Shown here: positions 1-34,803 of the stretch, one piece after another | How the letters are laid out: each line of letters begins with the position of its first letter | How positions within the stretch are numbered: position 1 is the first letter of the stretch | IMG/VR virus record: IMGVR_UViG_3300049846_000628 | Location: 62,001 to 126,000 of that record | Direction: 5' to 3' (one strand) | Length of the DNA: 64,000 nt | The notes under the pieces: generated by a model | Databases searched by the model: none | The model's input: the letters and a program-made list of their open reading frames with translations, nothing else | What the model was told of the DNA's origin: nothing | Translations under genes and position numbers: made by a program

Positions 1-722
1 CCGACAACTTCCTTTCCATCTTTTTCTTTTGACTTACTAAGATATATGATAGTAGAAGCGGCGTACTTAAGACCGCTACCACCACCCATCTCCTTTGTAG
101 GAACATAAGCACCGATAACATCATAAGTATGGTTGGTAACAATCATAGGAATGTTTGCCTGCCCCAACTTCAAAGTGAGCATACGGAAAGCACCTTTCAC
201 AAGTTGCGATTTAGTCATATCACGAACTTGCTTGTCGTTGAGTGCGTCAGTAATTTCTTTCTCAGTTGAAAGCATACCCAAAGAATCCAACACAAACATA
301 CAAGGTTTGCGTTCACCTTCAGGTTTCTTAAGGTAAATATCCACCGCTTTGAGTGCCTTACCACGGAACTCTTCTACGGTGACAACATTAACCACGACAA
401 GACGAGATGTGTCGATGCCGCGTGACTCCAAGAGTGATTTGGTAATAGCGGCTTCAGTATCAAAGTAGAGACAATACCCATCGGGGTTATTATCAAGAAA
501 ATTCTTAACCACGGCGAGAGAGAAAAAAGTTTTTCCAGTAGAAGACTCTCCAGCAATAGCAGTAATCTTATTCCCAGATACGCCGCCAAATATGCTACCT
601 GAAACCAGTGCATTAAAAATGTATGAACCCGTATCAACATAAGTCTCAGTCTCATCAATATCAGATGCTAGTTTGGTGTACTCTCCACCAACTTCTTTTA
701 CAATTTCTTTAAGAAAATCCAT
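1..722 (-). CDS. uvsX: RecA-like recombinase UvsX, 5' part (runs off the left edge)
   Basis: Hand translation from ATG at 722 gives [47 protein letters not shown]..., with Walker [16 protein letters not shown] and VLDSL. It overlaps the gp43 stop (TAATG). The ORF track misses it because it is truncated. Confidence 0.95.
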
Positions 723-3223
723 TAGGCAAAAAATAAATCAAGGTTTACAGTTTTTTCTACGTTCCATCCAATTGAATCAAGAATTGATTTCAATGGATCC
801 ACAAAACTCTTTTCAAATTGTAGTTCATAGTCAATGTATTTGTCAAGACCAAGTTCTTTTGGAAAATCTTGGATGAAAGAAATTACATTCTCCTGAATTA
901 TATTTGGTTTTTTCAAGAAAATGAACTTGACTTTCTCGCCATTATTAATAAGTGAATATTTATTAGTCAGTTTTTTCTCCTTTATATAATGATTAAAGAG
1001 AAGTGCTCCACGAATATGAATGGGAGTTTTGGGGGCATAAATTGTTGATGATGCTTGATACTTCCTAACATCAGAAGCAGTTCTTGGAAAAGCAATTTGT
1101 TCTGGAGGAAGTGCTTTAAATTCTTTACGACATTTTTCAATAAAGTCAATTACATCTTCTTCAGTTCCACTCATCATAAGTTTTAACCCATCCTTAATCA
1201 TTTGGCGACAAGGAGCTGGGGTTGATGATTTGACTGCCTCAATACCCATCATCTTCAGTTTGGGTTCTTCATACCGAACACCTTCACTATCCCACACGTT
1301 CAGAATGTAACGCTTTTTAGCAGTCCAGATTCCACGCTCAGCAATATTCTCACGCTTCATCTGCATCTTCTGATCGTATGCATTCACATACTCAGCCAGT
1401 TCTTGGTAGCAACTCTCAATATACTTCTCAAGTTCCACCTGACAGATCTTATCAAGGAACGAAACAACGCCTTCAGTAGTTTTCTCTCTTCCTTCGTATA
1501 CACGGTCAACCAAAGGACCCATATTGAGGTAGATAGAATCAGTATCTGAAGCAATAACATAATCAACTCCATCAGTTTTGAGAATCTTGTTTAGATAGGC
1601 ATTCATCTTGTTCTCAATCCAACGAATAGAAACCTGACCAGACAAGGTGATTGCCTCAGCATTTGCTAGTTTGTAATAACGGAAATACTGATTGCCGATA
1701 GCACCATAAGCAGAGTTAAGTTGAATCTTCCTCGCCATTTGGATGTTGTTGCACCGAGCAATCTCTTTTTCCAATTCCTTTGTCTTTTTCTTTTCATACT
1801 CTTGCTTTGCTACAAGCATTTTCTTTTTGTAGATGGTGCGATCTTCATAAATTTTTTGCATTAGTTCTGGAAGGAATCCACGAACATCCTTTCGGAACAT
1901 TGCACCATTCGCACAAACTGCCTTATCCTTATACAGTTCAAATGTAATTTCTTGATTAAGAATCTTATCAACAGTTACATTTGGATGCCTTTCCTCCAGA
2001 AGAGTTTCTGGTGAAATATTGTACTGCATAATGAGATGAGGATATAGGGAGTTAAGATCAAAAGAGACAACCCAATCATACTTCCCTGGAATCGGTTCTT
2101 TAACGTAGGCACCTGCATACTTAGAATCTTTGTCCGAACGTTCTTTTGGAGGAATCACAATATTCCTCTTTTTCAAATAATTGTAAATGATAGTATCCCA
2201 CATCCTAACCTGCGAAAACACATCAGCATAGTTTGCTTTAGCGTCGTAAGCCATTGTGATTGCAAGTTCAATCAGTTTCATCTTGTCTTCCAAACGGTCA
2301 ACAAGTTCCACGTCAACGATGTTGTACTCTACAAACTTCTGCCATCCTTTAGTATAGAAATCTTTGAATGTATCAAACTCAGAGTGATCTAGTTTCTTTT
2401 GCCCAAGTTCTACACTAGCAATGTAATCCAAACGATAAGATTCCTGCGCCTTATAAGTAAACTTCTTATAAAGATTCAGATAATCAAGCTGAGTAATCCC
2501 ACCAACATCGTAGGAAATATGCTTTCGCCCTGCAATATAAATCTCACTCTCAGTCACAAGACCCCAAGGAGACATACGCTTCATCAGTTTTTCACCCAGA
2601 ACACGATCCAGGCGACGAACCAAATACGGGATATCGTACAGTTCACTATTCCATCCAGTTACAACTTCTGGAGTATTTTCTTCAATCATCCACCAGTTGA
2701 TAAAATCATTCAGTAGATCATATTCTGTGGAAAAGGAACGGTACTCAACATTCTTTTGTTTATTTTGAAAAGGACCTTTTCCCCAAGTGCGAATCTTTTT
2801 AGAAGAATAATCTTGAATGGTAATCAAAAGAACTTCCTCTGCAGCAGATTCCACATCAGGGAATCCATTCTCAGAAGCAACCTCAATATCAAGAGTTGTA
2901 ACCTTGATCTTATTGATATCAAATCTCAGTTCTTCTTCAGGATACATCTCAGAAATATATTGATAGATGTATCCTGTATTACCATAGATTTTAAAGTTTT
3001 CTACGCCCTCATACTTTTTAATAAATTCACGACAGTCACGAACAGAACCAGGTTGAACTGATTCAACATAATCCCCACTTAGAGTCTGATATTTAGTTTT
3101 CTTATTAGAAGGAACAAAAAGAGTCGGGTTAAACTTCTCACGGGTCATAAAGTGTTTACCATCTTCATAACCACGGACTAGGAAGTGATCCCCGACCATT
3201 TGGACGTTTGTATAAAATCGCAT
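722..3223 (-). CDS. gp43: Family B DNA polymerase (T4 gp43-like)
   Basis: 833 aa; exonuclease motif DIEV, polymerase motifs [19 protein letters not shown] and ASDTDSIY. Normal length, no intein. Confidence 0.98.
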
Positions 3224-3477
3224 TATGCAGTCAATTCAAGATACTTTTCAACAATGTCTTCTTTAGGATCAACGATAGTCAAAATACTATCGGAATGAAT
3301 CATCATTTCTCTTTGATCTGTTACATCAGGCCAAGGAGTGAGATTTCCCTCAGCATCAATTTTAAATGGATTCACAAGTTTACAATCTGGTTCTCCAAGT
3401 TCAGAACCAACTTCAATAATTTCAGTGATAATTACGTTATCAACTTTCAGTAAAAGACACTTGACTTTCTTGCCCAT
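3223..3477 (-). CDS. Small hypothetical protein, probable Sm-like beta fold; paralog of 3440-3772 and 19971-20378
   Basis: 84 aa; shares the K-x-L-L-L-K...NP...PW...I-x-x-D-x-I-x-T pattern with the two paralogs; translationally coupled to gp43. Confidence 0.75.
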   Translation of the reverse strand: MGKKVKCLLLKVDNVIITEIIEVGSELGEPDCKLVNPFKIDAEGNLTPWPDVTDQREMMIHSDSILTIVDPKEDIVEKYLELTA

Positions 3478-3772
3478 TTACTTTCTCCTCATACATTTCT
3501 TTAATAGTTTGGACTGGTTCCACAATAGTAACAACCCAATCTGGTGGAACTGGAATTTGAGTATCACTGGTTAAGACAATCCAGGGAGACAAAGAAACCT
3601 CAAGGTCTCCACTTGTACTCTCATTCTCCTCAACAAGAAGAACTGTTTTCCTAACCTCAACTTTATGTGGGTTTGTAAACAAGTACCCACATACTACATC
3701 ATCAGCAATGAGTTCTTTTGCATCAGAAATTACGGTTTCACCAGACTTTAATAGTGCTAATTTAATGGACAT
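3440..3772 (-). CDS. Small hypothetical protein, probable Sm-like beta fold
   Basis: 110 aa; IKLALLKSGE...TNP...LSPW...VPPDWVVTIVEP; a sigma70 promoter lies just upstream. Confidence 0.8.
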   Translation of the reverse strand: MSIKLALLKSGETVISDAKELIADDVVCGYLFTNPHKVEVRKTVLLVEENESTSGDLEVSLSPWIVLTSDTQIPVPPDWVVTIVEPVQTIKEMYEEKVNGQESQVSFTES

Positions 3773-3794: not shown

Positions 3795-3823
3795 ATTATA
3801 GCAATAAAAAGGGGAGGCGTCAA
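3795..3823 (-). promoter_or_regulatory. Sigma70-type promoter TTGACG-N17-TATAAT
   Basis: -35 at 3823-3818, exact 17-nt spacer, -10 at 3800-3795; 23 nt upstream of the 3772 start codon. Confidence 0.75.
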
Positions 3824-3846
3824 CTGGATTTTGCCAGTTGCCTCCC
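3806..3846 (-). terminator. Intrinsic terminator (long bulged stem plus U-tract)
   Basis: Minus strand GGGAGG-CAACTGG-caaaat-CCAGTTG-acg-CCTCCC followed by CTTTTTATT. Confidence 0.75.
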
Positions 3847-3870
3847 TGCGCCGACGATATTCAAATCTAT

Positions 3871-4032
3871 TTATTCCTCATCCCCTCCAGCACTAGAGGA
3901 AGATCTCTTAGCACAAGCCTTTCCCCCAGGAGCCATAGCATAAGGAATTACCTTATAGCATTTAACCTTTGTTTTTTGTGGTGGATTTCCAAAGTCACCC
4001 ACCTTTTCCATAAACTGCTGGAAGGTTTTCAT
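3871..4032 (-). CDS. 53-aa ORF with a capsid-targeting-sequence-like N-terminus (not in ORF track)
   Basis: Hand translation MKTFQQFMEKVGDFGNPPQKTKVKCYKVIPYAMAPGGKACAKRSSSSAGGDEE*; late-promoter-like CTAAATA 13 nt upstream; fills the gap between hsp20 and the terminator. Confidence 0.75.
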   Translation of the reverse strand: MKTFQQFMEKVGDFGNPPQKTKVKCYKVIPYAMAPGGKACAKRSSSSAGGDEE

Positions 4033-4045
4033 TTGTTTTTTATTT

Positions 4046-4052
4046 TATTTAG
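4046..4052 (-). promoter_or_regulatory. Late promoter variant CTAAATA
   Basis: Overlaps the hsp20 stop codon, upstream of the 53-aa ORF. Confidence 0.55.
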
Positions 4053-4483
4053 AGATAGTCCTTTCTAGCGTGATGTTCTGGAACTACTTTCCCAAGTACG
4101 ATCCGTAGAAGTCCGTCTTCAAATGTGACTTCGCGGACTTCTGTGTCGTCGGATAAAGTCCACGCTCGTTTAAAACTTCTGCTAGCCACTCCCTTGTGGA
4201 TAAACGTCCTATCCTTTTCGGAATCTGTTTTTTGTCCTTCGACAAAAAGCTTTCCATATTCTGTGAAAACATTTACATCTCCTTTCTTAAAACCTGCGAG
4301 TGCAATTTCTAAGTGTGACTCAACATTATTTACCTGAACAAGATTATAAGGTGGGTAATTTGTTGTAGTTTCGTGAAGATTGAATAAGCGATCGAAATAT
4401 TCATCCATTCCAATGCTATTACGTGTGATCCTCTCCATTAGAGATGGAAGATCTGCAGCAGTATACCTTGTGAGGTTAGTCAT
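4049..4483 (-). CDS. hsp20: Small heat-shock protein (Hsp20/alpha-crystallin family)
   Basis: NYPPYN, LEIALAGF, FKRAWTLSD and FEDGLLRI motifs. Start moved to MTNLTRY (4483) because AAGGAG lies at 4497-4492. Confidence 0.95.
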   Translation of the reverse strand: MTNLTRYTAADLPSLMERITRNSIGMDEYFDRLFNLHETTTNYPPYNLVQVNNVESHLEIALAGFKKGDVNVFTEYGKLFVEGQKTDSEKDRTFIHKGVASRSFKRAWTLSDDTEVREVTFEDGLLRIVLGKVVPEHHARKDYL

Positions 4484-4559
4484 TATGGTAGCTCCTTTAA
4501 AAGCGAGTTTGTGTTTTGTGGACCCTTTCGGCATCCATTATTAATTATACAACAAACAT

Positions 4560-4585
4560 AAAAAAAGCGGGTGTTGAAACCCGCT
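4560..4585 (-). terminator. Intrinsic terminator after regA
   Basis: AGCGGGT-6nt-ACCCGCT stem followed by a T-tract on the minus strand; TATAAT (4549-4544) follows and could drive hsp20. Confidence 0.75.
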
Positions 4586-4590
4586 CTTTA

Positions 4591-5031
4591 TTATTCGGCA
4601 TCCTCTACCTTTTTCTTCTTCGCACCAATGTTATACTTGGTCTCTAGAATCCAATCTCCTTTGTCCTTGTAAGCAAGAACTTTAATTTGATTCAAAGGAG
4701 CAATATCTTGAATCTTAGTAACATCTACAATCTCAATCAGACCCCAATCAGCAAGAAGTTGGGCGATACGATTGCGACGCTGAACATCATTCACAGTCAG
4801 GTTTGCGTGCTTACCGTCCAGGGCAAACAGTTCCTTAAAGTGAACGAGATAATATCTACCTTGCTTGTGCAGAATATGACAAGATTGATAGATTTTCTTT
4901 TCCTTTCTTGAAGCAACTCCGATACGAGTCAAAGTTTCACGCACTTTCAAAAAGTCATCAGGTTCATTAAGAACCACTTCCACCATTTGATCGGGTGCCC
5001 ACTTCACTTCGGGTTCTTGAACGACACTCAT
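4591..5031 (-). CDS. regA: Translational repressor RegA
   Basis: DDFLKVRETLTRIGVA, QSCHILHKQGRYYLVHFKELFALDG and RRNRIAQLLADWGL are RegA motifs; usual position after gp62. Confidence 0.95.
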   Translation of the reverse strand: MSVVQEPEVKWAPDQMVEVVLNEPDDFLKVRETLTRIGVASRKEKKIYQSCHILHKQGRYYLVHFKELFALDGKHANLTVNDVQRRNRIAQLLADWGLIEIVDVTKIQDIAPLNQIKVLAYKDKGDWILETKYNIGAKKKKVEDAE

Positions 5032-5408
5032 TTTGTTCCTCCAGTTTCAAATTTCGATTTAATAAAAGTAAGTTGTTCTTTAGTAAGAATCCTCAAAGCT
5101 TGTTTTGCCTTTTCATTACTATAACCATAATAACGTTTGACATAATCAAGGTCTTTGATTGTATCTTTTCGGAGCCAAGGAGAAAACCTCTTCTTGATCC
5201 TCAGACTATTTATAAAAAAGTCATACTGCAGTTTCTTTGGGAGGAAATGATATCTATTCATTTCATTGGCGTACATAATACAATCAATGTGACCAGAAAG
5301 GCACCGATTGATGATATACGGAGCGTATTCTTTTTCAAGTGAAGGGTCTTCATCAATCAGATGTTTTTTCGTCTGATTGATCGAGTTTAACCAGTCCTTT
5401 AATTCCAT
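5028..5408 (-). CDS. gp62: Clamp loader small subunit
   Basis: 126 aa; YAPYIINRCLS, ANEMN and YYGYSNEKAKQAL; directly upstream of regA. Confidence 0.9.
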   Translation of the reverse strand: MELKDWLNSINQTKKHLIDEDPSLEKEYAPYIINRCLSGHIDCIMYANEMNRYHFLPKKLQYDFFINSLRIKKRFSPWLRKDTIKDLDYVKRYYGYSNEKAKQALRILTKEQLTFIKSKFETGGTK

Positions 5409-6228
5409 AATTAAAAAGCAGTAATTCTTTACGGTGTTTTTGGTCTCTCATATACTCACCAACGGAACGCATCGTATAAGTCAAATCAAACTCTGCAGCG
5501 TTCCAGTTCTTAAAACGATCCTTTACAAGTTGATCTGAGTTATAACTAATCAATTGATGCATAGGATAACGAAAATCACAATCAGCAGCAAACTTATCGT
5601 GATCAAATCTTTTATGCATTGATCCCTTGTGCCCATAGAGATTATCCTTAATATCATAAGGAGGATCGAGATACACAAAAGCACTAGTGTCTCCATCCAG
5701 AAGATAATCGTATGAGTAATTAGTTATACGCCACTTTGAAATCAACGAAGAATACGCAGGCAGTTTTTCGATCCCTCGCAGACTGAAGTTGGCGTTGGAT
5801 GCTTGTGGTGAAAATGATGAACTCTCCGTGAGACCGCTGAAACTACACTTATTAACAACATAGAAAGCCACAGCACGATCAAGATTTGATAGAGTTTGAT
5901 CATTGACGTGCTCCTTTGACTTTAGAAAAAGTTCTTTAGCAAGTTCAGGAGTATTGTATGCAAGTTTGAGGTCAACTAGTTCATTTTTTAGATCATTACC
6001 AAATATCTGGAGTTGCTGCCAGAAGTTTACAAGCGGTTCATAAAGATCATTCACCCAAATATCTAGGCTAGGGTACTTCTTTGTGATATGAATCGCAACA
6101 CTTCCACCACCAAGAAAAGGTTCACGAAACTCATTATAGTTGCGGAGATCTGGAAAGTAAGGTCCCATCTTTTCACAAGCACGGGACTTACCACCAGGAT
6201 AACGAAGAGGGGTTTTCAAAGATTTCAT
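5353..6228 (-). CDS. dam: DNA N6-adenine methyltransferase (Dam/D12 class)
   Basis: PLRYPGGKS, EPFLGGGSV (motif I) and VYLDPPY (motif IV). Confidence 0.93.
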   Translation of the reverse strand: MKSLKTPLRYPGGKSRACEKMGPYFPDLRNYNEFREPFLGGGSVAIHITKKYPSLDIWVNDLYEPLVNFWQQLQIFGNDLKNELVDLKLAYNTPELAKELFLKSKEHVNDQTLSNLDRAVAFYVVNKCSFSGLTESSSFSPQASNANFSLRGIEKLPAYSSLISKWRITNYSYDYLLDGDTSAFVYLDPPYDIKDNLYGHKGSMHKRFDHDKFAADCDFRYPMHQLISYNSDQLVKDRFKNWNAAEFDLTYTMRSVGEYMRDQKHRKELLLFNYGIKGLVKLDQSDEKTSD

Positions 6229-6743
6229 ACCGATTCCTCAATCAATTGATAAAGTTTAGCAGCAAAATCACCTTTATTCACTGGCGATACATTTTTTGCC
6301 AGAAAAGTAATATCACTATGGTTTACAGTAAATGCAACATTTGCATCTTTAAGTTTTGCATTTTTAATACAATCATCCCAAGAACAAATGCCAACACTAT
6401 AGTTTTTAGTATCCCAGAGAAGCATATAGTCAAATGTTTTTTCTGGAAGACCTAGATTTTTTCCTTGAAAATTTTTTAATGTAATTTCTTTTGTATATGG
6501 AACTTCTTTTTGGAAGATTCCATCCATACCTTTAGATTCATATGAAAGATTATCTAAAATTCCAATAAAATCCTTACCATTCTCACTATCACCAACATAT
6601 CGAAGTTGTCCACCACTATACTTAGCAATAGCGATTTCTTGAACTTCTGCCCTCAAAGGGCGTGTTTGATTTCGTTTAAGTCCATTAGTAGACTCAATAA
6701 CACCAAAAATTTCAGGAAAATTAAAAAGTTCAGGATTGATCAT
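6225..6743 (-). CDS. Hypothetical protein, possible PD-(D/E)xK nuclease
   Basis: 172 aa; E36 on a predicted helix, then D58 (GKDF) and E69-S-K71; coupled to dam by a 4-nt overlap. Confidence 0.5.
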   Translation of the reverse strand: MINPELFNFPEIFGVIESTNGLKRNQTRPLRAEVQEIAIAKYSGGQLRYVGDSENGKDFIGILDNLSYESKGMDGIFQKEVPYTKEITLKNFQGKNLGLPEKTFDYMLLWDTKNYSVGICSWDDCIKNAKLKDANVAFTVNHSDITFLAKNVSPVNKGDFAAKLYQLIEESV

Positions 6744-6939
6744 AATCAGGTTGGTTATACTTCAAGTATTCAAAAAATGTAAGTTTCATTTCTTTCTGAG
6801 TCATACCACAATGCTTTGCAGCAGCAGGAAGAGTCATCTTTGCGCGAAACAATGCTTCATTTGCTTCCCTAACGTTCTCTGGAGTAGTCTTGACTTTATC
6901 TTCCTTTAGAGACTTATAATCAATTTTATAAGGATTCAT
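6730..6939 (-). CDS. Small hypothetical protein, possible helix-turn-helix
   Basis: 69 aa; MTLPAAAKHCGMTQKEMK is HTH-like; ATGA overlap with the gp44 stop. Confidence 0.65.
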   Translation of the reverse strand: MNPYKIDYKSLKEDKVKTTPENVREANEALFRAKMTLPAAAKHCGMTQKEMKLTFFEYLKYNQPDYDQS

Positions 6940-7895
6940 ACAAATTCACACTCCACCATTATTTCAGTCAGACAAGCAAGAAGATTTATTTCCTGGTCAG
7001 CAACGAAACAACACTGGTATTGGTACTTAGCAATAATAAGAACGGCAGCAGGGATAGACTGGGGTGAAAGGCAATCATAAGCGGTGTCATAAATCCTGCG
7101 AAGTAGACTAGAAGCATCGTTATCCAAGTTGGAGACCACCCACTTTCTGACTTCAGAAAAGTTTTTATCTTTGAGATTTTTAATAAGTTCATTTACACTA
7201 ACATCAGAAAAAGTTGCAAGAATTCCACTATCAATCTTTCCTCCTGCAGAGTACCTCTGAAGAGTATTGAGAAGTTGCCTTGTATCTGGAAAATAGTTTT
7301 TAATGAGTTCTGCTACAACTTTTTTATCATACCCAACTTTTTCCTCATCAAGAATATGAGACATTCTATTAAAAATAGAAAGCATCAACTCAGGTTTTTC
7401 ATTCTTTGGAATGGGGGTGTATTTAAGAACAACACACCTTGATTGAATTGGTTCAATAATCTTGTTTAGATTATTACAAGTAAAAATAAAACAAACATTA
7501 TTGTGAAGTTGTTCAATTACGCCACGAAGACAGAGCATCACATCATTAGTTGTTCCATCAAACTCGTCAAAAAATACGACCTTTTTCTTATCATTAAACA
7601 TAGAAACAGTTGTTCCAAAGTTAATGACTTGATTGCGAATAGTATCCAAATACCTCCCTTCAGATGAACCATTCAAAAACAAAACATCTTGTTTAGTAAT
7701 CTTACAGAGAGTTTTGATTGTTTGAGTTTTTCCACACCCTTGGGAACCTTGAAGAATAAGATTTTGATTTAGTTGTCCTTCATCTACTACATTAGTAAAA
7801 AACTCTTTTACGCTTTTAGTAAGAATCAAATCTTCAACAGATTCTGGTGCCCAACGCTCAACCCAGAGAAATGGTTTTTTATCAGTCAGTTCCAT
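6936..7895 (-). CDS. gp44: Clamp loader large subunit (AAA+)
   Basis: Walker A GSQGCGKT, Walker B FFDEFD, SRC motif, C-terminal KYQYQ...VADQEINLLACLTEIM. Confidence 0.95.
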   Translation of the reverse strand: MELTDKKPFLWVERWAPESVEDLILTKSVKEFFTNVVDEGQLNQNLILQGSQGCGKTQTIKTLCKITKQDVLFLNGSSEGRYLDTIRNQVINFGTTVSMFNDKKKVVFFDEFDGTTNDVMLCLRGVIEQLHNNVCFIFTCNNLNKIIEPIQSRCVVLKYTPIPKNEKPELMLSIFNRMSHILDEEKVGYDKKVVAELIKNYFPDTRQLLNTLQRYSAGGKIDSGILATFSDVSVNELIKNLKDKNFSEVRKWVVSNLDNDASSLLRRIYDTAYDCLSPQSIPAAVLIIAKYQYQCCFVADQEINLLACLTEIMVECEFV

Positions 7896-7911
7896 ATCAA
7901 AAAAATAAAAA

Positions 7912-8445
7912 TCAAATGTAATAATAATTTGGGAACGATTTACTTCTCATTCTCCAACTTGCAGTATCCCGATGGATATCAAGTATTTTAGCACACTCTT
8001 TCACAGATTCATAAATGACTCCATCAACACAACATTTTTTACCCATAGATTTTGAAAGATTTTTTCTATGCTCTTCAGTAAAAGGAACTCCTTTTCTTGG
8101 ATGAGAATTTTTAGACCAATATTCTCTTTGCGATTCACGCATTTTATCAATAGAATCTTTAGTATGTTTGGTTCCCCATAAAGAATTCAATGAAGGTTTT
8201 AACCACTCACAATATTGTTGTTCTACTGATTTAATTTCTTCATCTTCGTGAATCCACTTGACTACTTCAATAGTAAAATTATGATACCCATACTTTAAAA
8301 AATTTTCATAAAGTTTAGGACAATCCATTTTATTAGAAGCACACATAGTTATATGTTTAGCAAATCTAAGCATATAATTTTTTTCAGTAGAACCTATGTA
8401 ATTTTCTCCCGTTATTTTGTTTCGTATTTGATAAACACAGTTCAT
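7912..8445 (-). mobile_element. Free-standing GIY-YIG homing endonuclease-like gene with NUMOD3-like and C-terminal HTH-like DNA-binding modules
   Basis: CVYQIRNKITGENYIGST; repeats KHTKDSIDKMRES and PFTEEHRKNLSKS; C-terminal IYESVKECAKILDIHRDTASWR; AT-rich; inserted among core genes. Confidence 0.88.
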
Positions 8446-8483
8446 TTACTAAACCTCGTAGTATAATACTATTTAGTAAATGA
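8442..8483 (-). promoter_or_regulatory. Start-codon-sequestering hairpin containing late promoter CTAAATA (8476-8470)
   Basis: 12-bp inverted repeat TCATTTACTAAA / TTTAGTAAATGA including the ATG, with an inner TAGTA/TACTA stem. Confidence 0.75.
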
Positions 8484-8488
8484 GTTAT

Positions 8489-9001
8489 TTACACCCAAGA
8501 TGGTCGTCTTTCGGGCAGTCGAAGGTAGTTGTCCTTCACCCAAGGTTTTGAAGCAATGTACCTTTTATATGCAGTAAAGGTATCAATACTCTCATCAAAT
8601 TTCCATTCTTCAGGCATTGCCCTTGCGAACGGAGTTACTTCTGGAATCTTTCCTTTTGGAAACAAATAGAAAGCATCTACAAGAGTCTTGTAGCAGGAGT
8701 GAGTTTTATTATACCGCAAAGTGTACTCATCGCACAAGTTGAGACCCCACTTAATCAACCAATAGGCATTATGGATGTTTTCCATTGCCCATTTGGTGCA
8801 GGGATGATTGCGGAATGCACCTTTTTCAGTTTTGTAAGGGGTATGGTCAGTTTTGTACAAGTAACCATACCCGTACCCCCATTTTTCCGATGCAACGATA
8901 GAAAGCATTTGGCAGCATTCTAAGGGCATCTTGACGATGTGCTTATCGGGGAGACAAATAGCACTTTCTGCAGGCCAAGGGGAGGTAACGAAGATATTCA
9001 T
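8489..9001 (-). CDS. Pyrimidine-dimer DNA glycosylase-like protein (DenV/Pyr_excise-like)
   Basis: MNIF...LPDKHIVKMPLECCQMLS...NHPCTKWA...EYTLRYNKTH matches the recalled family pattern; start taken at MNIF (9001). Confidence 0.7.
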   Translation of the reverse strand: MNIFVTSPWPAESAICLPDKHIVKMPLECCQMLSIVASEKWGYGYGYLYKTDHTPYKTEKGAFRNHPCTKWAMENIHNAYWLIKWGLNLCDEYTLRYNKTHSCYKTLVDAFYLFPKGKIPEVTPFARAMPEEWKFDESIDTFTAYKRYIASKPWVKDNYLRLPERRPSWV

Positions 9002-9426
9002 CAGAGACAATACTTTTGAACAACATACTTCACTTTTTCTGGTTTATCTTCCATCCAATATGCTTCGTGCTCCATCTTAGCAGATGCAACAGATACCTTT
9101 GTAGAATTTTTAATATCTTGATATTTTGCATCTGGTATTTGCATTTGTTTTTGAGAAATACCAAAAGGTTTATATCCATTGCACATATGACCCACATGAA
9201 CTGCTTCATGATATAGAGTTTCATTTATATAAAACTGTTTATCATACCCACTGTTTTTTATGTTATTGGTGCATATTATAAACTTTTTACCAAAGTCTAC
9301 ATAACCAAATATATCTTTATTACTCCTACAAAATCCAACATTTTCTCTGACTGAATATTTTGCTTTATAAATTTGATTGAGAATGTCTTTGGCTTGAGGG
9401 GTGAGATAAAGAAGAAATTCCATCAT
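9001..9426 (-). CDS. Hypothetical protein with zincin HExxH motif
   Basis: 141 aa; TLYHEAVHVGH and a downstream EHEAY. Confidence 0.6.
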   Translation of the reverse strand: MMEFLLYLTPQAKDILNQIYKAKYSVRENVGFCRSNKDIFGYVDFGKKFIICTNNIKNSGYDKQFYINETLYHEAVHVGHMCNGYKPFGISQKQMQIPDAKYQDIKNSTKVSVASAKMEHEAYWMEDKPEKVKYVVQKYCL

Positions 9427-10115
9427 TCAAAAGTAGAATCAGGTTCCAGAGCAATATAATACTTCAGGTTGTACTTAGTGTTCGTGAACTGAGACAAAAG
9501 TTTAGAAGACACAACTACATCATAGGCACCAGGAATAATCTTGATGTTTTCTACCTTGAAGTTGAAAGTGAATTCAGCATCAGTCTCACCAACCACGATA
9601 GCGTATTCGTTAGAAGTATCGTTCTTCTTATCACGAACCACCAGTTTGATCACACCCGCTTCACCAACAGCAGATAGGTCGGGAAGTTGATATACTGCAG
9701 CTGCCTTAACCAGTTTTTCCAAAGAAGTGCTATCTAGTTGGAAACAAACATCTTGAGAAGGGAGTTGAATTTCTTTATCGGGAGGAGAAATAATCACGTT
9801 AGGATCAGCATAGAAATACTTCACCCGACGCTTACCTTCTTTGATACTAAGATAAGATTCTTCAGTAAAGTCTAGGTCAGGATCTTGGTGCAGACTCAGA
9901 CCATTCAGAAACTGATTTAGATCGTAGATAGCAAAGTCACGAGGAAACTCTTCAGTGATGTCTGCCTCAGCAAGAATGTTCTTCGCAACAGAAATAGTAC
10001 GAAGTTGAGTACCCTTCTTTACAAGAATGGAGTTGTTGATACCCGCAAAGTTCTTGAGCAGAGCAAGGGTATTATCAGAGAGTTTCATAGTTTTGTCTTG
10101 GAGTTTCATAATCAA
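9423..10115 (-). CDS. gp45: Sliding clamp
   Basis: MKLSDNTLALLKNFAGINNSIL, FAIYDLNQFL and YYIALEPDS; near gp44 and gp62. Confidence 0.95.
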   Translation of the reverse strand: MIMKLQDKTMKLSDNTLALLKNFAGINNSILVKKGTQLRTISVAKNILAEADITEEFPRDFAIYDLNQFLNGLSLHQDPDLDFTEESYLSIKEGKRRVKYFYADPNVIISPPDKEIQLPSQDVCFQLDSTSLEKLVKAAAVYQLPDLSAVGEAGVIKLVVRDKKNDTSNEYAIVVGETDAEFTFNFKVENIKIIPGAYDVVVSSKLLSQFTNTKYNLKYYIALEPDSTFE

Positions 10116-10465
10116 CGGAATTCAGTCAGACCATTATCTTTGCGAGAATAGTGACCATCAAAGTGAAGCAGAAGCATAGCATAATGAATCACTTTGAGAA
10201 GATCACGCTTATTGCGACCATCTTTATCACCATAGCGACTTCCATACTTCAGGATGTTTGCTTGGCAGAATCCAGGAGCAAGATCTTTAGCAGCCATCAA
10301 GTCAATCGTTTGAATATCTTGATACTGATGATTGTGCCCACAATAGTGACTTCCGTAGGTGCTAGTCACATAGTCTTCAATATCTTTAAGAATTTTATCT
10401 TCGTTGTATTTCCAGAGATGATTAGTGTTTTCAGGCATAGTAATAGTAAAGGTTGAATCACTCAT
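10112..10465 (-). CDS. DUF3310-like small protein
   Basis: YGSHY...GFCQANILKYGSRYGDKDG..DLLKVIHY pattern. Confidence 0.65.
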   Translation of the reverse strand: MSDSTFTITMPENTNHLWKYNEDKILKDIEDYVTSTYGSHYCGHNHQYQDIQTIDLMAAKDLAPGFCQANILKYGSRYGDKDGRNKRDLLKVIHYAMLLLHFDGHYSRKDNGLTEFR

Positions 10466-10501
10466 AAAAGGGAAGGCACATTTTTACCTTCCCCAATTAT
10501 A

Positions 10502-11605
10502 TCAGGATTGTGCTTCCTGGTCAACAGGCATTTGGAAGTCAGCATCCACTTTATCATACAGTTCAAGGAAGGACTGCTTGGTTTCGTCATCAAATCGGTT
10601 GACGCACACTTGAATTGCCTTTGCCTTGTCTTGGAAGATGCTGTAGGCACGGATAATGTGGGTCAGGCGGCGGGTGCTGATGATTTCCTCAATACCACCA
10701 TCATAGAAGGTCTTACGGATGATGTCTGCCCAGTCCACAAGACGCTTACAGAAGTCACGGTCTTCCACGCCAAGGTCCAGAGCGATGCCTTCCAGGATCT
10801 TCTGTTCAGTAGCAGGGGCAGGATAGGACTGCTCAAAGGTCACGGGGAAACGCTCAAGGAATGCTTCGTTGAGAACATTGGTGCCGATAAAGCGTCCATC
10901 ATCAGAACCCTTACCTTTGGTGTTAGCGGTGGCGACCACATTAAAACCAGCAGCAGGTTTCACGAAGCGACCGATCTTCTTGAGGAACACACCCTTACCT
11001 TCGAGAATGGATTGCAGGCACAGGATCTTATTAGATGCAAGGTCAATTTCATCCAGCAGCAGGATAGCGCCACGCTCAAGTGCTTCCACCACAGGACCGT
11101 TGTGCCAGACAGTTTCACCGTTCACAAGGCGGAAACCACCAATCAGGTCATCCTCGTCAGTCTCAATAGTGATATTCACACGAATCATTTCACGCTTGAG
11201 TTGAGCACACGCTTGCTCCACCGAGAACGTTTTACCGTTACCCGACAGACCCGTGATAAACGCAGGGTAAAAGATACGGGACTGAATAATTTTTTTAATA
11301 TCACCAAAGTTACCAAACTTGACGAAGGTATCATCTTTATCAGGAATGAGGTTTTGTTCAACAGCAGGCAGAGCAGCGGGTGCTTGATATGCCTGCTCCA
11401 TTTTACCAACAACGCTAGGGGTCACTTCCAGGTTCCAACGACCACGAGCAGTCTTATAACCTTCAAGGCGACGAGTCACGGTCTGATAGTTGAGACTACG
11501 AGAAGCACAGAAACCTTTGAGGTCGCCAGAAGTAATTTCAGAACCATAGAGTTCTTTGATGCTTTCAATGAGTTGCTGGTCGTTCACAGAAGACTTGCGA
11601 GACAT
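10502..11605 (-). CDS. cobS: CobS/MoxR-like AAA+ ATPase
   Basis: Walker A GLSGNGKT, DEDDLIGG, Walker B LLLDEID, ATANTKG, NEAFLERF and ISTRRL. Confidence 0.9.
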   Translation of the reverse strand: MSRKSSVNDQQLIESIKELYGSEITSGDLKGFCASRSLNYQTVTRRLEGYKTARGRWNLEVTPSVVGKMEQAYQAPAALPAVEQNLIPDKDDTFVKFGNFGDIKKIIQSRIFYPAFITGLSGNGKTFSVEQACAQLKREMIRVNITIETDEDDLIGGFRLVNGETVWHNGPVVEALERGAILLLDEIDLASNKILCLQSILEGKGVFLKKIGRFVKPAAGFNVVATANTKGKGSDDGRFIGTNVLNEAFLERFPVTFEQSYPAPATEQKILEGIALDLGVEDRDFCKRLVDWADIIRKTFYDGGIEEIISTRRLTHIIRAYSIFQDKAKAIQVCVNRFDDETKQSFLELYDKVDADFQMPVDQEAQS

Positions 11606-11648
11606 AATGTAGTTAGGTGGTTTTGTTAACTGAAGATATTATAGCAAT

Positions 11649-11673
11649 AAAAAAGGGGCAACCAAGTGCCCCT
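11649..11673 (-). terminator. Intrinsic terminator immediately followed by TATAAT (11643-11638)
   Basis: AGGGGCA-6nt-TGCCCCT then TTTTTATTGC-TATAAT on the minus strand. Confidence 0.7.
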
Positions 11674-11676
11674 TAT

Positions 11677-11693
11677 GACAGTTTGGAAAGTGG
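11677..11693. repeat. Conserved 17-bp dyad-like motif, copy 1
   Basis: GACAGTTTGGAAAGTGG, 16/17 identical to 14093-14109; both copies sit just upstream of a hairpin plus TATAAT. Confidence 0.7.
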
Positions 11694-11858
11694 TTACCTA
11701 GTTTTTTTCTTTGAAAATTTAACCGATACTGGTCTCTCAAATGGAGTGCCCTCTTGAACAATTCCATCACCATCACGATCTCTTGCGTCCTCATTATAAC
11801 CATCCAACGTTTCAAGATCTGGTGTTTTTTCTGTGTACAAGTCTGAGAATCTGCTCAT
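11694..11858 (-). CDS. 54-aa ORF with a DxDxDG motif (not in ORF track)
   Basis: Hand translation MSRFSDLYTEKTPDLETLDGYNEDARDRDGDGIVQEGTPFERPVSVKFSKKKTR*; ATAAATA at 11890-11884 upstream. Confidence 0.7.
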   Translation of the reverse strand: MSRFSDLYTEKTPDLETLDGYNEDARDRDGDGIVQEGTPFERPVSVKFSKKKTR

Positions 11859-11883
11859 TAGACCTAATAGAATTCCTTAAAAT

Positions 11884-11890
11884 TATTTAT
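11884..11890 (-). promoter_or_regulatory. Late promoter ATAAATA
   Basis: Overlaps the stop of the vWA gene, upstream of the 54-aa ORF. Confidence 0.55.
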
Positions 11891-14034
11891 CAGGCAACAA
11901 GTTCCACAAACTCACCAAGAATCTTCTTGTTCATCTTTTTAGATTTCAGACTCTTCACAAAAGCAGATTTGATTTGAGACTTGGTAGCATCTTCTGCAAC
12001 TTCAAACTCACTGTTCTGGGCAAGGGCATTAGCAGAGAGACCAAAGTAAGAATGATAACCAGACTTCTTGATGGTAAATGCCTTTTCTTTTTTCCAAGCA
12101 GACATCACTTTTTCATAATCAGGTCCATAAAACCCACAATAGCGGCGAATAAAACTACCAGCATCACGCGATTCAAGAACACGAATACCAATGAAGTTGA
12201 TATCGGTAAACCTATCCCGAAGATTGCGAAGCATAACATCAGTGAACTCGTGATAATCACAATCACAAGAATAGGTCATACCAGTCTTACGGTCACGGAT
12301 GAAAGCATTAGGACCGATATGTGAGGTGCCCATAAAAGCATCTTCCTCCCAGCGACGTTGAATTTCACGGTGATACTTGAGCATCGCACCCTCACCATCA
12401 GTCAGAATCACACACTGAACTTTCTGGAGTTTGTTTTCCTTCTGGAACTTAGGAAGAATCTGGTGAAGAGAAATCAGTGCCTCATTCAGGGGGGTGCCCG
12501 AAAGACTCATACCCATAGGAGGCTGATAGGAAACGTGAGAATGATAACGGAAGGAAGCAGCAAGACGGAAGATATTCTTCATCTGCTCATCCAGAGTCTT
12601 ACTGTTCACTTTACTGGTGAGAAGATTCATCATAGAGAACCATTCGCCAACCTGAACAAGACCATCCTTTTTCTTATAGGCAAGTTCGCGGATATTTGCC
12701 TTACCGTCCTCATCATACTTCACCAGAGGATAATCAGTAGTGAAAGCATAAACCTCAAATGGAATTGCAACTTTTTTACAGAACCAAACAAGGTTGAACA
12801 GTTGCTTGACCGTATCCATCATCACTTCACACATAGAACCAGACCAGTCCAGTACAAACACCAGACCGTGATTCTTACCATCAGAAAGAGTGGTGACTTT
12901 TTTGAAAAGGTCTTCGTTGTATTTGTAGGTATGAAGTTTGGTGCAGTCCAGAACACCAGTGCGAGCAGTTGTAGCACGGGCATAGGAATCTGCTGCCTTG
13001 CGGCACTCAAACTCTTTCACCAGATAGTTGACTTCCTTCTGAGCAGAACGCTTGAATTCTACAAAATCCCTATCAACTCCACCAAATACATCCTCAGATT
13101 TCCATTCACGGTCTACAAGGAAAGAATCCCAAGATTCTTTACACCTATCGTGAATCTCTGCATTGGAGACAATAATTTTATTCAGGTCAAGTTTAGGCAG
13201 TTCCAGATAGACATTCTCATACCCATCATTATTAATAAGTTCCTTGAGTGCTTCCTCAAGATTTTCCATCGTCTTGACTTCAGGTTCCTCACCAACATCA
13301 GGACTCTGAGCAGTAGGTTGCTTCTCTTGCCCAGTTTCACTAGAGGTAGGAGATTCGGAAGTTTCATCCTGAGGTTGGTCATTCTCACCTTCCTGCTGGT
13401 CTGTAAAATCAGAAGCAAGTTGTTGACTCGCACCAGAATCCTGCGATTCCAGATTATCCATCGGAGTCTTGGTTTCTTCCTCTTGCTTGTGCTTGCAATA
13501 CTTATAAAGTGCCTCTGCAGCAATCAGAACATCGGCAAAGGTCTCAGTATCAGCAATCAGATTGATAATCTCAGTCTCTTCGCCACGCTCAATCGGCACA
13601 TCAACATAGTTACCAACCTTGAACCACAGGTTTGCACGGTCGGCAAGATTGTAAGTATCCAGATTATCATCCTTGATTTGGAAGAAATCTTCATCGGCAA
13701 GTTCTTTATATCCGTTATAAAAACTTTTAGGGGAACCTGGATATTTTCTTTTACAAAGTTTTTCTACCCGCACATCCTCACAAATATTTACAAAAGTCGC
13801 TGGGACTTTACATTCTTTAGTCCAATCATAATTTGGGGTCCAAAGGGCGTGGCTAATTTCGTGCAAAACAAGCATAGTGTAAATATTATCACTTGCTTTT
13901 TCCCACATAGGTAAGGTCAATACCCTTGTATGGACATTAAAACAAGCAGTCTCTACCTTCTTGTGCTCAACCACAAGGTCTTCAGTAGCAAGCAGTTTAG
14001 CAAGTTGGGACTTGATTTCGTGGCGGACGGTCAT
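11890..14034 (-). CDS. CobT-like vWA-domain protein with an N-terminal HExxH metallopeptidase-like region
   Basis: HEISH near the N-terminus, an acidic linker, then MIDAS elements DWSGS, SGTP and LTDGE; adjacent to cobS. Start taken at MTVRHEIK (14034). Confidence 0.85.
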   Translation of the reverse strand: MTVRHEIKSQLAKLLATEDLVVEHKKVETACFNVHTRVLTLPMWEKASDNIYTMLVLHEISHALWTPNYDWTKECKVPATFVNICEDVRVEKLCKRKYPGSPKSFYNGYKELADEDFFQIKDDNLDTYNLADRANLWFKVGNYVDVPIERGEETEIINLIADTETFADVLIAAEALYKYCKHKQEEETKTPMDNLESQDSGASQQLASDFTDQQEGENDQPQDETSESPTSSETGQEKQPTAQSPDVGEEPEVKTMENLEEALKELINNDGYENVYLELPKLDLNKIIVSNAEIHDRCKESWDSFLVDREWKSEDVFGGVDRDFVEFKRSAQKEVNYLVKEFECRKAADSYARATTARTGVLDCTKLHTYKYNEDLFKKVTTLSDGKNHGLVFVLDWSGSMCEVMMDTVKQLFNLVWFCKKVAIPFEVYAFTTDYPLVKYDEDGKANIRELAYKKKDGLVQVGEWFSMMNLLTSKVNSKTLDEQMKNIFRLAASFRYHSHVSYQPPMGMSLSGTPLNEALISLHQILPKFQKENKLQKVQCVILTDGEGAMLKYHREIQRRWEEDAFMGTSHIGPNAFIRDRKTGMTYSCDCDYHEFTDVMLRNLRDRFTDINFIGIRVLESRDAGSFIRRYCGFYGPDYEKVMSAWKKEKAFTIKKSGYHSYFGLSANALAQNSEFEVAEDATKSQIKSAFVKSLKSKKMNKKILGEFVELVA

Positions 14035-14111: not shown

Positions 14112-14678
14112 TCAGACTCCACGCATTTGCATTGCCGAGGTATTAGCTCTATCTAATGCAGCACCAGGATTCTGCTTACCTGGAGTATACTTATGGGCAG
14201 ATCCAGGTTCTCTTTTATTCATCTCACCAACTTTACCCACTAAGTATTTTTGTCTGGCAGTTAAATCTTGCTCAACAATGCTCTTCTTCCACTCTTCACT
14301 CATATTCGCCATAATAGCAAGTGCTGCTTGATTAGTATCAGCGTAACCTTCTGCGACCAGGTGCTCAAGAATAACATCAAAAAAATCAAAGGATTCTTTT
14401 TGATCTTCCTTTTTAGGCATTCTAGCGCCAGTTTTATGTCTTTCTACACCAGCAGAATCTCTATAAGTTTCTCTTTCGGGTCTTGGGGAAACATAACCTA
14501 CACCAGGAACATTTCCAGTTTTTCCTTGCTTTCTAGCTTCGTTTCTTGCTGCTGCTCTTTGTGCTGCTCTTTGACGATTTCTATCGTAAGAAGACATAGC
14601 TTCATCAAGTTGCTCTTGATTTTCATATACAGCATTAAATGCTTCCATCAAACCTGCATATTCTTTTTGAATGTCCAT
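14112..14678 (-). CDS. Hypothetical late protein; paralog of 14710-15585
   Basis: 188 aa; N-terminal LMEAFNAVYE and internal FDFFDVILEHLVAEGY; TATAAATA upstream. Confidence 0.8.
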   Translation of the reverse strand: MDIQKEYAGLMEAFNAVYENQEQLDEAMSSYDRNRQRAAQRAAARNEARKQGKTGNVPGVGYVSPRPERETYRDSAGVERHKTGARMPKKEDQKESFDFFDVILEHLVAEGYADTNQAALAIMANMSEEWKKSIVEQDLTARQKYLVGKVGEMNKREPGSAHKYTPGKQNPGAALDRANTSAMQMRGV

Positions 14679-14709: not shown

Positions 14710-15585
14710 TCAATATACTTTGTAATTCTTTCCACTCCAACTAAATGTAGATCCCATTCCACCTTTTGCCTTTGCAGCACCATATGCTTTATCAAAGGAT
14801 TGAGCTCTTGTTAATCCCTGATCAGGATTTTTTGGACCTTGCTTTGGTTTATAATCACCTCTCTTTAAAGCACCGGAGAGAGTTGCATCTCCAGTAGGTC
14901 TAGGAGCCATTACTGAAGCAGCAACACCTGCGGGAGTAATGTTCCTTACTGCTGCAGCTGCGCCTAAAGTTTTAGCAGCTGGTTCAGCAACTTTTCTTCC
15001 CTGATCAGCAAATCTTCTTAGTTCGGGAAACTTATCCATATTTGGACCAGTAGCACGAACAGTTGCTCCAGGTCTATATGGATTTGGCTTTGAAGTTGTT
15101 GGTTTTGCAGTTGCCTTTACAGGTGGTTTAGGTGCTTTTACTTGAACTGGTTTGTTTGGGTAAAGCATTTTTTTCAAACCACGAGCAAATACTTCTGTTG
15201 GATGTGGTTTATCAAATCCAAGAAGATTTGCAATCCCTCTACCAATAACTTCTTGTGGATGCATACCTTGCTCCACAACATAAGTCATAATGTACTTAGA
15301 TTCTTCTACTGTACATCCTTCACTAACAAGATATTCAAATACCTCATCATAGATATCAAAATCCTCATCAATTAATTCACCTTCTAGTTCATAATGTGCG
15401 TTTTGTACATTTGCACTCTTAGATGGTGTTAAAGGAACAACTTTTCCCCCACCATATTTTGGATTTTTATCTATTATTTTCTGAAGAGTTGCATCAGGAT
15501 TATCGGTAGGAACACCAATCTTTTGCTCATAAACTTTTTGATATGCTTCCACCAAATCTTGATATTTTTTACCGTACATTTTCAA
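14710..15585 (-). CDS. Hypothetical late protein; paralog of 14112-14678
   Basis: 291 aa; LVEAYQKVYE and DFDIYDEVFEYLVSEG; Lys/Pro/Gly-rich C-terminus; TATAAATA upstream. Confidence 0.8.
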   Translation of the reverse strand: MKMYGKKYQDLVEAYQKVYEQKIGVPTDNPDATLQKIIDKNPKYGGGKVVPLTPSKSANVQNAHYELEGELIDEDFDIYDEVFEYLVSEGCTVEESKYIMTYVVEQGMHPQEVIGRGIANLLGFDKPHPTEVFARGLKKMLYPNKPVQVKAPKPPVKATAKPTTSKPNPYRPGATVRATGPNMDKFPELRRFADQGRKVAEPAAKTLGAAAAVRNITPAGVAASVMAPRPTGDATLSGALKRGDYKPKQGPKNPDQGLTRAQSFDKAYGAAKAKGGMGSTFSWSGKNYKVY

Positions 15586-25574: not shown

Positions 25575-26225
25575 TTATAGATTTGAAAGAAACTCTTGGA
25601 ACAATTGAATTTTATGTTCCTGAAGTCTTTTTTCATCTACTAGAGTGTTAATTCTACGTTTTGCAGATTCTGCAAGTTTCTCACGAAGGATTCCACCTTC
25701 CCAAACCCACTCTTTTCCTTCCATAATTCCCTGAACAAAAGCGTCAGGAGCAGAAGGATCGGCAACGATATCTGCAGCAGTTGCTAGCATAAAATCTTCG
25801 CCAACAATTTTATGACCTTCATTGGTCATTTTGAGTGAACCAACACCACGAGAAGAAACACCAAGACAAACACCTTCACCAATAAGTGATTTTGCAATCT
25901 TACCCATTGGAGTTTCTAGAAGTTGTGCCTTACCTCTAAAATTTGTTCCATCTTGCTCAAGAGAAACAATTTTATGAGAAACACGGTCAAGGTTTACGGT
26001 TGGACCATCTGGGTGCCCAAGTTCTCCAAGAGCACGACCTTTGCAAACAAAAGTTTCGTTATATCTTTTTACTTCGCGTGAAAGAGTTTCCATTGGATAC
26101 ATTCTTCCATTGCGATTGCAAATATCACCCTGAAGGAATACTCCTTCAATGTACATTTTCCTTTGAGGTCCTTTTCCTTCGGTAACAAATTCTACCTTTT
26201 GAATTTCTTCTGTGATGAGTTTCAT
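25575..26225 (-). CDS. gp21: Prohead core protease
   Basis: NRNGRMY, GELGHP, GVSSRGVGS and DIVADPSAPDA. Confidence 0.97.
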   Translation of the reverse strand: MKLITEEIQKVEFVTEGKGPQRKMYIEGVFLQGDICNRNGRMYPMETLSREVKRYNETFVCKGRALGELGHPDGPTVNLDRVSHKIVSLEQDGTNFRGKAQLLETPMGKIAKSLIGEGVCLGVSSRGVGSLKMTNEGHKIVGEDFMLATAADIVADPSAPDAFVQGIMEGKEWVWEGGILREKLAESAKRRINTLVDEKRLQEHKIQLFQEFLSNL

Positions 26226-28676: not shown

Positions 28677-28683
28677 TATTTAG
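28677..28683 (-). promoter_or_regulatory. Late promoter variant CTAAATA
   Basis: Overlaps the gp19 stop, upstream of gp20. Confidence 0.55.
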
Positions 28684-34488: not shown

Positions 34489-34803
34489 TCAATCACTCCA
34501 AGTTAGGCTTTCTGGTCTGTATCTTTGTGCGTTTTTAATTTTGATAGAATCTGATGATAATGGATAAACATTATGAACAATTGCTCCAGGATATTCACCC
34601 TGAAGTTGTTCGGCAAGTGCATTTTTATCAATCATTTTACCTTCAACTTCCAATCGATATAGTTTTCCTTGCCAAACTACATCAGCAAGAAAAGATTCAC
34701 CGACTGGTTGCGATTGTGGTTCAGATCCATTGATATAAAGATTTCCGTTAAAGTCGCCAGCAATGTTGACGCTTTCTGATAGGAATTGTTTGAATGATTT
34801 CAT
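34489..34803 (-). CDS. Hypothetical protein with a capsid-targeting-sequence-like N-terminus
   Basis: Starts MKSFKQFLSE-S; 104 aa. Confidence 0.8.
   Translation of the reverse strand: MKSFKQFLSESVNIAGDFNGNLYINGSEPQSQPVGESFLADVVWQGKLYRLEVEGKMIDKNALAEQLQGEYPGAIVHNVYPLSSDSIKIKNAQRYRPESLTWSD

Follow-up and report, generated by a model that had tools for sequence, protein, structure and literature searches.

The window analysed here, a 64,000-nt stretch, corresponds to bases 62001-126000 of the 211,201-bp genome of a freshwater T4-like cyanomyovirus, whose closest relatives are S-SRM01 and DSL-LC03 (freshwater and estuarine T4-like cyanomyoviruses of the Kyanoviridae). A small open reading frame, referred to as ORF A, lies on the minus strand at positions 3871-4032; it starts with ATG, encodes 53 amino acids followed by a stop codon, and has the N-terminus MKTFQQFMEK. 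ORF A is located within the replication module, between hsp20 and the gp43 DNA polymerase gene, and all of the surrounding genes are on the minus strand. Upstream of it are gp44, a homing-endonuclease-like ORF, dam, gp62, regA, and, directly adjacent, hsp20 (4049-4534; TAA stop codon at 4049-4051). Downstream are two DUF6561 ORFs (3440-3772 and 3223-3477), which are tandem overlapping paralogues between ORF A and the polymerase gene, and then gp43 itself (722-3223). The position and N-terminus of ORF A, the CTAAATA motif preceding it, and its location in the replication region had been described in a first-pass annotation of this DNA, and all were found as described.

The first nine codons (4006-4032), MKTFQQFME, were assigned to a putative capsid-targeting propeptide, which ends in F-M-E and is predicted to form an amphipathic helix. 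The following 44 codons (3874-4005) would encode the mature peptide, made up of a conserved core and a short acidic tail, if the predicted cleavage point is correct. The body after Glu9 contains 8 Lys and Arg vs 4 Asp and Glu and has a pI of 9.35; the basic character pointed out at first reading thus holds, as do the two cysteines, Cys25 and Cys40. These two residues are not features of the whole family: they are retained in close relatives and are replaced by Met, Tyr, or Phe or absent in distant ones. In the relatives, the gene is annotated as hypothetical, from the internal Met8 in S-SRM01 (gp246) and from Met1 in DSL-LC02 (WJZ48372). The codons upstream of the annotated Met8 of gp246 encode an identical leader, and the existence of family members without Met8 indicates that Met1 is the true start.

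The late-promoter-like CTAAATA was mapped to 4046-4052 on the minus strand, where it includes the hsp20 TAA stop codon and ends 13 nt ahead of the ATG. Genome-wide, the coding strand carries 21 copies of CTAAATA vs 5 on the other strand, and 68 vs 6 copies of NATAAATA, the published late promoter of cyanomyoviruses (PMC2984593). CTAAATA stands ahead of the portal gene, and NATAAATA ahead of the scaffold and sheath genes. The equivalent site upstream of the family gene carries the canonical TATAAATA in a 45%-identity member and CTAAATA in S-SRM01; since CTAAATA overlaps the hsp20 stop codon, part of this conservation may be due to coding. The distribution of the motif makes it likely that ORF A is transcribed late from CTAAATA, and it is possible that read-through from hsp20 also transcribes it. 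No Shine-Dalgarno sequence precedes the ATG. The unit is closed by an intrinsic terminator (3806-3846, minus strand) consisting of a bulged 13-bp GC-rich hairpin (3812-3846) and a T run. The hairpin, with a fold energy of -21.9 kcal/mol (z -2.0), is conserved in S-SRM01 and was missed by a simple consensus scan because of its bulge. Overlapping the terminator is a sigma-70-type promoter for the DUF6561 genes and the polymerase gene (TTGACG-17-TATAAT, 3795-3823, minus strand; 11/12 matches, extended -10). ORF A is therefore an insulated cassette of late-type promoter, ORF, and terminator inside an early-type replication module.

In three low-depth riverine RNA libraries, sparse contigs were found on the polymerase gene, the DUF6561 genes, and hsp20, and none covered 3893-4260. 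A freshwater RNA library, X4, gave even cover of the whole 5.5-kb stretch, and this evenness suggests that the library may simply contain phage DNA. When window 3851-4150 was compared with an X4 contig, the flanks 3851-3876 and 4110-4150 matched, and 248 differing letters replaced the intervening 233. The contig may come from a co-occurring relative in which this locus holds a diverged allele or an exchanged cassette; with a flank as short as 26 nt, the evidence is weak.

Homologues of ORF A (family A) were collected by a word-indexed protein search, which gave 24 clusters of 42-69 aa at 90% identity, and by a profile search of 1.84 billion representatives, which gave 19 representatives at 50% identity that were 35-59 aa long with one exception of 130 aa. 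The alignment consists, in order, of the leader, a variable stretch, an invariant core, and a short acidic or Gly-rich tail. The leader, MKTFxxF with Glu at 9 or 10, is common to all members; the Glu is at position 9 where the leader has F-x-E, as in many members, at position 10 where it has I/L/M/V-x-E, and at about position 13 in a few longer leaders. The core is approximately …KVIxYxMA…PxGKAxAKRSSSSAGG, in which I29, Y31, M33, P35, A39, A41, K42, R43, S44, and S47 are invariant. The dN/dS values of ORF A against three relatives were 0.15-0.28, and its first 18 codons differ from those of S-SRM01 by synonymous changes only. The location directly after hsp20 is kept even in distant members that are only 45% identical. 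ORF A is a real gene; the first-pass annotation had named lack of conservation in related phages as evidence against its proposal, and the ORF was found to be conserved, with synteny and purifying selection. In a tblastn search of 50,697 phage records, family A was found only in S-SRM01, its only cultured carrier, and in the metagenome-assembled DSL-LC02. The phage or near-identical relatives are present in freshwater, drinking-water, estuary, and river metagenomes of 12 studies. Family A is conserved and, so far, restricted to freshwater and estuarine lineages.

In the T4 record (NC_000866), the internal proteins IPII and IPIII begin with MKTYQEFIAE|A, in agreement with the leader quoted at first reading, and IPI begins with MKTFKEF…ITE|A. 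The N-terminal 10 residues of IPIII suffice for packaging. Residues 4 and 7 contribute most to targeting, and processing is governed by residues 8 and 10; with Asp at position 10, the protein is still targeted but no longer cleaved (PMC9026906). The prohead protease gp21 cuts after Glu (PMC5694885). The leader of ORF A retains M1, K2, T3, the aromatic residue at 4, Q5, and F7 of the T4 leaders and is closed by Glu, so that a T4-type tag with both targeting residues is present in MKTFQQFME. ORF A further resembles IPII and IPIII as a small, basic, non-essential-looking and apparently late gene product with its own late-type promoter outside the head gene cluster, in a genome that has gp21 and gp22 homologues. 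On the other hand, the mature parts are unrelated (a predicted 44 aa vs about 90 and 184), Glu is at 9 instead of 10, and Phe instead of Ile is at P3; moreover, the T-even IP loci are highly variable (PMC9026906), unlike family A with its fixed position and invariant core. The packaging of IPII and IPIII in T4 is established, and that of the ORF A product is predicted. No homology of the mature part to IPI, IPII, or IPIII was found in Pfam, PHROG, or PDB or by tblastn against the 50,697 phage records.

IPI shares MKTF and Phe7 with ORF A, and differs in its propeptide of 19 residues and its dissimilar body. IPI is small and injected, and IPI* blocks a host restriction enzyme; IPI is therefore the model for an anti-defence role. 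A closer parallel in size is T4 gp61.1, a 54-aa hypothetical protein encoded beside the primase gene (NC_000866, 18966-19130, minus strand) with the leader MKTFKEFIKE|D. It is like the 53-aa product of ORF A in its length, CTS-like leader, Gly/Ser-rich middle, charged tail, and location in the replication module. Homology between the two bodies was undetectable, and gp61.1, itself a hypothetical protein, is a parallel and not an explanation.

The machinery on which such a leader would act is encoded in the window on the minus strand. A gp21-type prohead protease (25575-26225; Peptidase_S77, E 6.8e-37) is the enzyme expected to trim the leader, and an acidic scaffold/prohead core protein of the gp22 type (24374-25534), recognised by its composition and its position between gp21 and gp23, is presumed by analogy to be the docking partner. 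In the major capsid protein gp23 (22914-24317), alignment with T4 gp23 placed F-L-Y-E54|S at the T4 L-T-E|A cut, and this sequence holds the only Glu near the aligned site. The protease therefore probably retains hydrophobic-x-Glu specificity, as far as the aligned site can be taken as the actual one. The putative site of ORF A, F7-M8-E9|K10, departs from the T4 rule of I or L at 8 and Glu at 10, having Glu at 9 and Phe at P3. Cleavage after Glu9 is plausible from the sequence, provided that Phe is tolerated at P3; otherwise, packaging could take place without cleavage, as in the T4 Asp10 mutant.

The leader is not confined to ORF A. Over the 211-kb genome, a degenerate leader pattern was matched five times on the coding strand, 5/5 at ORF starts, compared with a mean of 0.2 and a maximum of 2 in 200 shuffles, which places its occurrence beyond chance. 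Besides ORF A, the matches, all on the minus strand, were a very basic ORF of 56 aa (genome 137627-137797; pI 11.6; MKTFQQFMEQ), a basic ORF of 137 aa (genome 46835-47248; pI 10.3; MKTFQQFCED), an acidic 104-aa ORF of the phrog_1742 or D family between the terminase small and large subunit genes (window 34489-34803; MKSFKQFLSE|S), and a 434-aa cytidylyltransferase-like enzyme (genome 56315-57619; MKSFFQFIAEA). The bodies of the five are unrelated, and their leader codons differ at synonymous sites, indicating that conservation acts at the peptide level. In S-SRM01, the pattern was matched eight times on the coding strand and never on the opposite one, which with its cytidylyltransferase makes at least nine, and DSL-LC02 has three leader-bearing ORFs. 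Most leader-bearing ORFs have NATAAATA or CTAAATA just upstream, and in several of those of S-SRM01 a terminator is followed by CTAAATA or TATAAATA 10-13 nt before the ATG. Together, the four ORFs found besides ORF A are a predicted head-cargo set of this genome.

Two neighbours of these ORFs were also noted. The ORF after the cytidylyltransferase gene begins with MKKHIAE|E, and a virion protein of S-SZBM1 (_139) is its homologue. The gene of a very basic 534-aa protein with DUF5661 and DUF6321 (window 34805-36409, minus strand) follows a CTAAATA promoter and is flanked by the 104-aa leader ORF and the gene for the small terminase subunit; in S-SCSM1, the homologous ORF29 carries a virion-protein annotation.

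The leader was then compared with published virion proteomes of cyanophages. A scan of S-CREM2 for F..F(NTN codon).E, done without reference to its proteome, gave nine matches, five of which were at the N-termini of annotated ORFs: gp6, a SAM hydrolase (MKDFDSFLEE; 19 virion peptides); gp12, a Cas9-like nuclease (…RFASFMAEA at residues 17-26; 28 peptides); gp14, a kinase (KRFDAFLTEE; 21 peptides); gp136 (MQTFSMFFSED; 8 peptides); and gp154, a cytidylyltransferase (MKNFSSFLTEA; 3 peptides). All five are in the virion table (PMC10665884), against a background of 52/221 (p about 7e-4). Two further small proteins detected in this virion, gp13 (78 aa, MKDLHSFLTEQ) and gp15 (MNFSEFNES), have leader variants that were noticed after the proteome had been inspected; their neighbours gp5, gp7, and gp16, which were not detected, lack a leader of this kind. 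At 3837-13331 of S-CREM2 (OR473000), the genes of the SAM hydrolase, the Cas9-like nuclease, gp13, the APH-like kinase, and gp15 are clustered behind TATAAATA or GATAAATA; the virion-detected non-structural proteins of this cluster are all leader-bearing, and their common tag is unmentioned in PMC10665884.

A leader-bearing orthologue of the cytidylyltransferase/NMNAT is present in this genome, S-SRM01, DSL-LC02, Syn9, S-SZBM1, S-CREM2, and S-SCSM1, and has been detected in the virions of S-SZBM1 (PMC9146016) and S-SCSM1 (PMC9602691), the latter paper citing S-CBWM1 as well. The cytidyltransferase of S-PM2 has a different N-terminus without the leader, which means that the tag is not universal in the family. 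The D-family homologues of the 104-aa ORF, S-SCSM1 ORF30 and S-SZBM1 _191, as well as S-SZBM1_192, are absent from the virion lists; for these three small leader ORFs, either the tag does not suffice or cargo goes undetected when it is small or degraded. Across the three published proteomes, leader-bearing ORFs were detected in virions in 7/10 cases vs about 1.9 expected (P about 5e-4). The leader of ORF A is of the same type, M-K-x-F-x-x-F-hydrophobic-x-E, as those of the non-structural virion proteins of S-CREM2 (gp6, gp13, gp14, gp15, gp136, and gp154) and of the virion NMNAT/cytidylyltransferase of S-SCSM1 and S-SZBM1, and these proteins are encoded behind late promoters (NATAAATA). Unlike ORF A, the leader proteins of the three phages are mostly large enzymes with unrelated bodies; they were found by experiment in CsCl-purified virions. 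Within the literature that was searchable, no paper linked the capsid targeting sequence and cyanophages, and the cited proteome papers are silent on a common leader.

Searches for a function of the body gave no match in Pfam, PHROG, PADLOC, or PDB by profile search, and nothing usable in the ESM Atlas. An AF2 model based on an alignment of 25 sequences (pLDDT 64, pTM 0.26) contained only the leader helix (residues 4-10) and a weak hairpin, with low confidence. Three other readings of the sequence were rejected. The tail tube protein (window 28680-29270) has the C-terminal end …SSSAGGSDIN, which resembles SSSSAGGDEE of ORF A, but this end is not conserved in five relatives, and the resemblance was dismissed as a low-complexity coincidence. 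A RiPP or double-glycine precursor would have a GG at the end of its leader, a core rich in Cys, Ser, or Thr behind it, and genes for modification or export nearby; in ORF A, the GG is 3-4 residues before the C-terminus with only the acidic tail after it, and the neighbours are hsp20 and the DUF6561 genes. A signal peptide or membrane anchor does not fit the leader, which is polar and amphipathic and has no hydrophobic stretch.

Based on the leader, its T4 counterparts, and the proteomes of related phages, it is fairly probable that the product of ORF A is packaged into the head as a capsid-targeted internal protein. The best explanation of the whole gene, which we regard as somewhat probable, is that it encodes the 53-aa precursor of a small internal head peptide. 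The precursor would be produced late from CTAAATA, perhaps also through read-through from hsp20. Its first nine residues may fold into an amphipathic helix with Phe4 and Phe7 exposed, the positions that carry the targeting information in T4; by analogy with T4 and with the proteomes of relatives, this helix would dock the precursor on the gp22/gp21 assembly core, around which the shell would close. The gp21-type protease would then probably cut after Glu9 (F-M-E|K), a non-canonical site, and thereby release the basic 44-aa peptide, which may stay with the packaged DNA and enter the cell alongside it. The invariant core (…Y.MA…GKA.AKRSSSSAGG) with its acidic tail speaks for a single, specific partner that is itself conserved and to which the peptide binds, more than for mere neutralisation of charge. 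ORF A is probably a further member of the T4-type capsid-targeted internal proteins.

The first-pass annotation had proposed an injected internal protein, possibly active against host defence. Loading of the product into the head gained weight from the T4-type capsid-targeting leader, given the shared tag, the gp21 and gp22 homologues, and the virion detection of seven out of ten leader-bearing ORFs; injection is a supposition. The anti-defence part gained none: PADLOC, Pfam, and the Atlas provided no lead, with neither similarity to a known anti-defence protein nor linkage to a defence target, and the family is conserved rather than hypervariable. Its conserved position and invariant core argue against a fast arms race, unlike the hypervariable IP loci of T4. 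An anti-defence function is only one possible role of the peptide and is pure speculation.

The same position and core would suit a phage-internal partner better than an arms-race target, and could be explained if the leader brought the peptide into the prohead core as an accessory that aids core or scaffold assembly or DNA condensation. The peptide would then be degraded or expelled at maturation, like T4 gp67, gp68, and the internal peptides derived from them, instead of being an injected effector. The T4 proteins are also small, enter the core, and are cut by gp21 behind Glu, and cyanomyoviruses lack gp67 and gp68 homologues (PMC2984593), so small leader proteins could fill their role; the D family, encoded in the head/packaging module and unseen in two virion proteomes, is in keeping with this. 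However, the genes of gp67 and gp68 belong to the head gene cluster, and the two proteins are required for head shape and are for the most part degraded, whereas ORF A lies in the replication module away from the head genes and, apart from the leader, contains no further hydrophobic-x-Glu site that would permit degradation. Since family A is missing from most Kyanoviridae isolates, with only S-SRM01 and DSL-LC02 as carriers among the 50,697 phage records, it cannot be an essential core part, and we consider an assembly role unlikely. It is still less likely that ORF A encodes a small late protein that acts within the cytoplasm of the infected cell, with an N-terminal motif that serves something other than packaging, e.g., efficient translation without a Shine-Dalgarno sequence from a very short A-rich 5' UTR, or that represents a recombination cassette. 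The ATG is 13 nt past the promoter motif, and other small leader ORFs likewise lack a Shine-Dalgarno sequence and start at 10-13 nt; AAA as second codon is frequent in well-expressed genes, and three leader-bearing ORFs are absent from virion proteomes. Nevertheless, the leader is conserved as amino acids with synonymous variation, its conserved positions (aromatic 4, Phe7, and Glu 9/10) are the targeting and processing positions of T4 (PMC9026906), and leader-bearing proteins are strongly enriched in virions.

Gene order in other lineages raises the question of whether the Ser run of KRSSSSAGG is modified, e.g., nucleotidylylated, by an NTP_transf_2 protein as its substrate or partner, which would be compatible with packaging. 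In DSL-LC02 (L007:2671-3423) and in metagenomic members around P0019 (e.g., L078:4162-4875), the small gene is translationally coupled, through an ATGA overlap of its stop with the next start, to a gene for an NTP_transf_2 protein of 237-250 aa, and DSL-LC03 has such a gene at the equivalent site (L002:1713-2426). This adjacency is the sole evidence, however; the nucleotidyltransferase gene is absent from the locus here and in S-SRM01, where the small gene is kept, and the small gene is undetectable in DSL-LC03, where the nucleotidyltransferase gene is present. We therefore regard such a partnership as highly doubtful. In the window, the place of the NTP_transf_2 gene is taken by the terminator and the sigma-70-type promoter (3795-3846). 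As for a chance ORF, its short length, the missing Shine-Dalgarno sequence, and the missing matches in Pfam, PHROG, PADLOC, and PDB could be cited in favour, but dozens of homologues, the invariant core, synteny, purifying selection, and a promoter-like motif and terminator of its own refute this reading, which retains next to no probability.

Returning to the internal head peptide, a wider reading can be put forward tentatively, as a possibility that we do not hold to be probable: M-K-x-F-x-x-F-(hydrophobic)-(x)-E would be a general capsid-loading tag of the Kyanoviridae that can be read from the sequence and that defines the injected cargo of each phage, and family A would be a conserved injected peptide with one conserved host or phage target bound via KRSSSSAGG. 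If this is true, the DNA would be accompanied into the cell by a SAM hydrolase, an NMNAT-like cytidylyltransferase, a kinase, a Cas9-like nuclease, and several tiny peptides, which would act before the expression of any phage gene; the 53-aa family A would be the smallest such cargo. The papers that reported virion enzymes of cyanophages (cytidylyltransferase/NMNAT, SAM hydrolase, and kinase) could only guess at their encapsidation, and a common T4-like targeting leader would explain how these enzymes enter the head. It would also allow the injected cargo of uncultured cyanophages to be predicted from sequence. Foreign proteins have already been loaded into T4 heads by means of the tag, and a working tag would provide a handle for loading them into cyanophage heads.

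A second common N-terminal motif, roughly Y/I..L.EA[YF]..VY.[ED], was found at the head of basic low-complexity late ORFs behind NATAAATA promoters. Its carriers are the ORFs at window 14112-14678 and 14710-15579 (minus strand), a 748-aa ORF downstream of genome 46835, and DSL-LC02 L007:1942-2499, and the motif may be another assembly or targeting signal. In addition, many GIY-YIG-type homing-endonuclease-like paralogues are distributed over the genome, e.g., at window 7912-8445 and at genome positions of about 164959, 142711, 48474, 35515, and 8679, and NATAAATA late-promoter motifs stand ahead of most of them.
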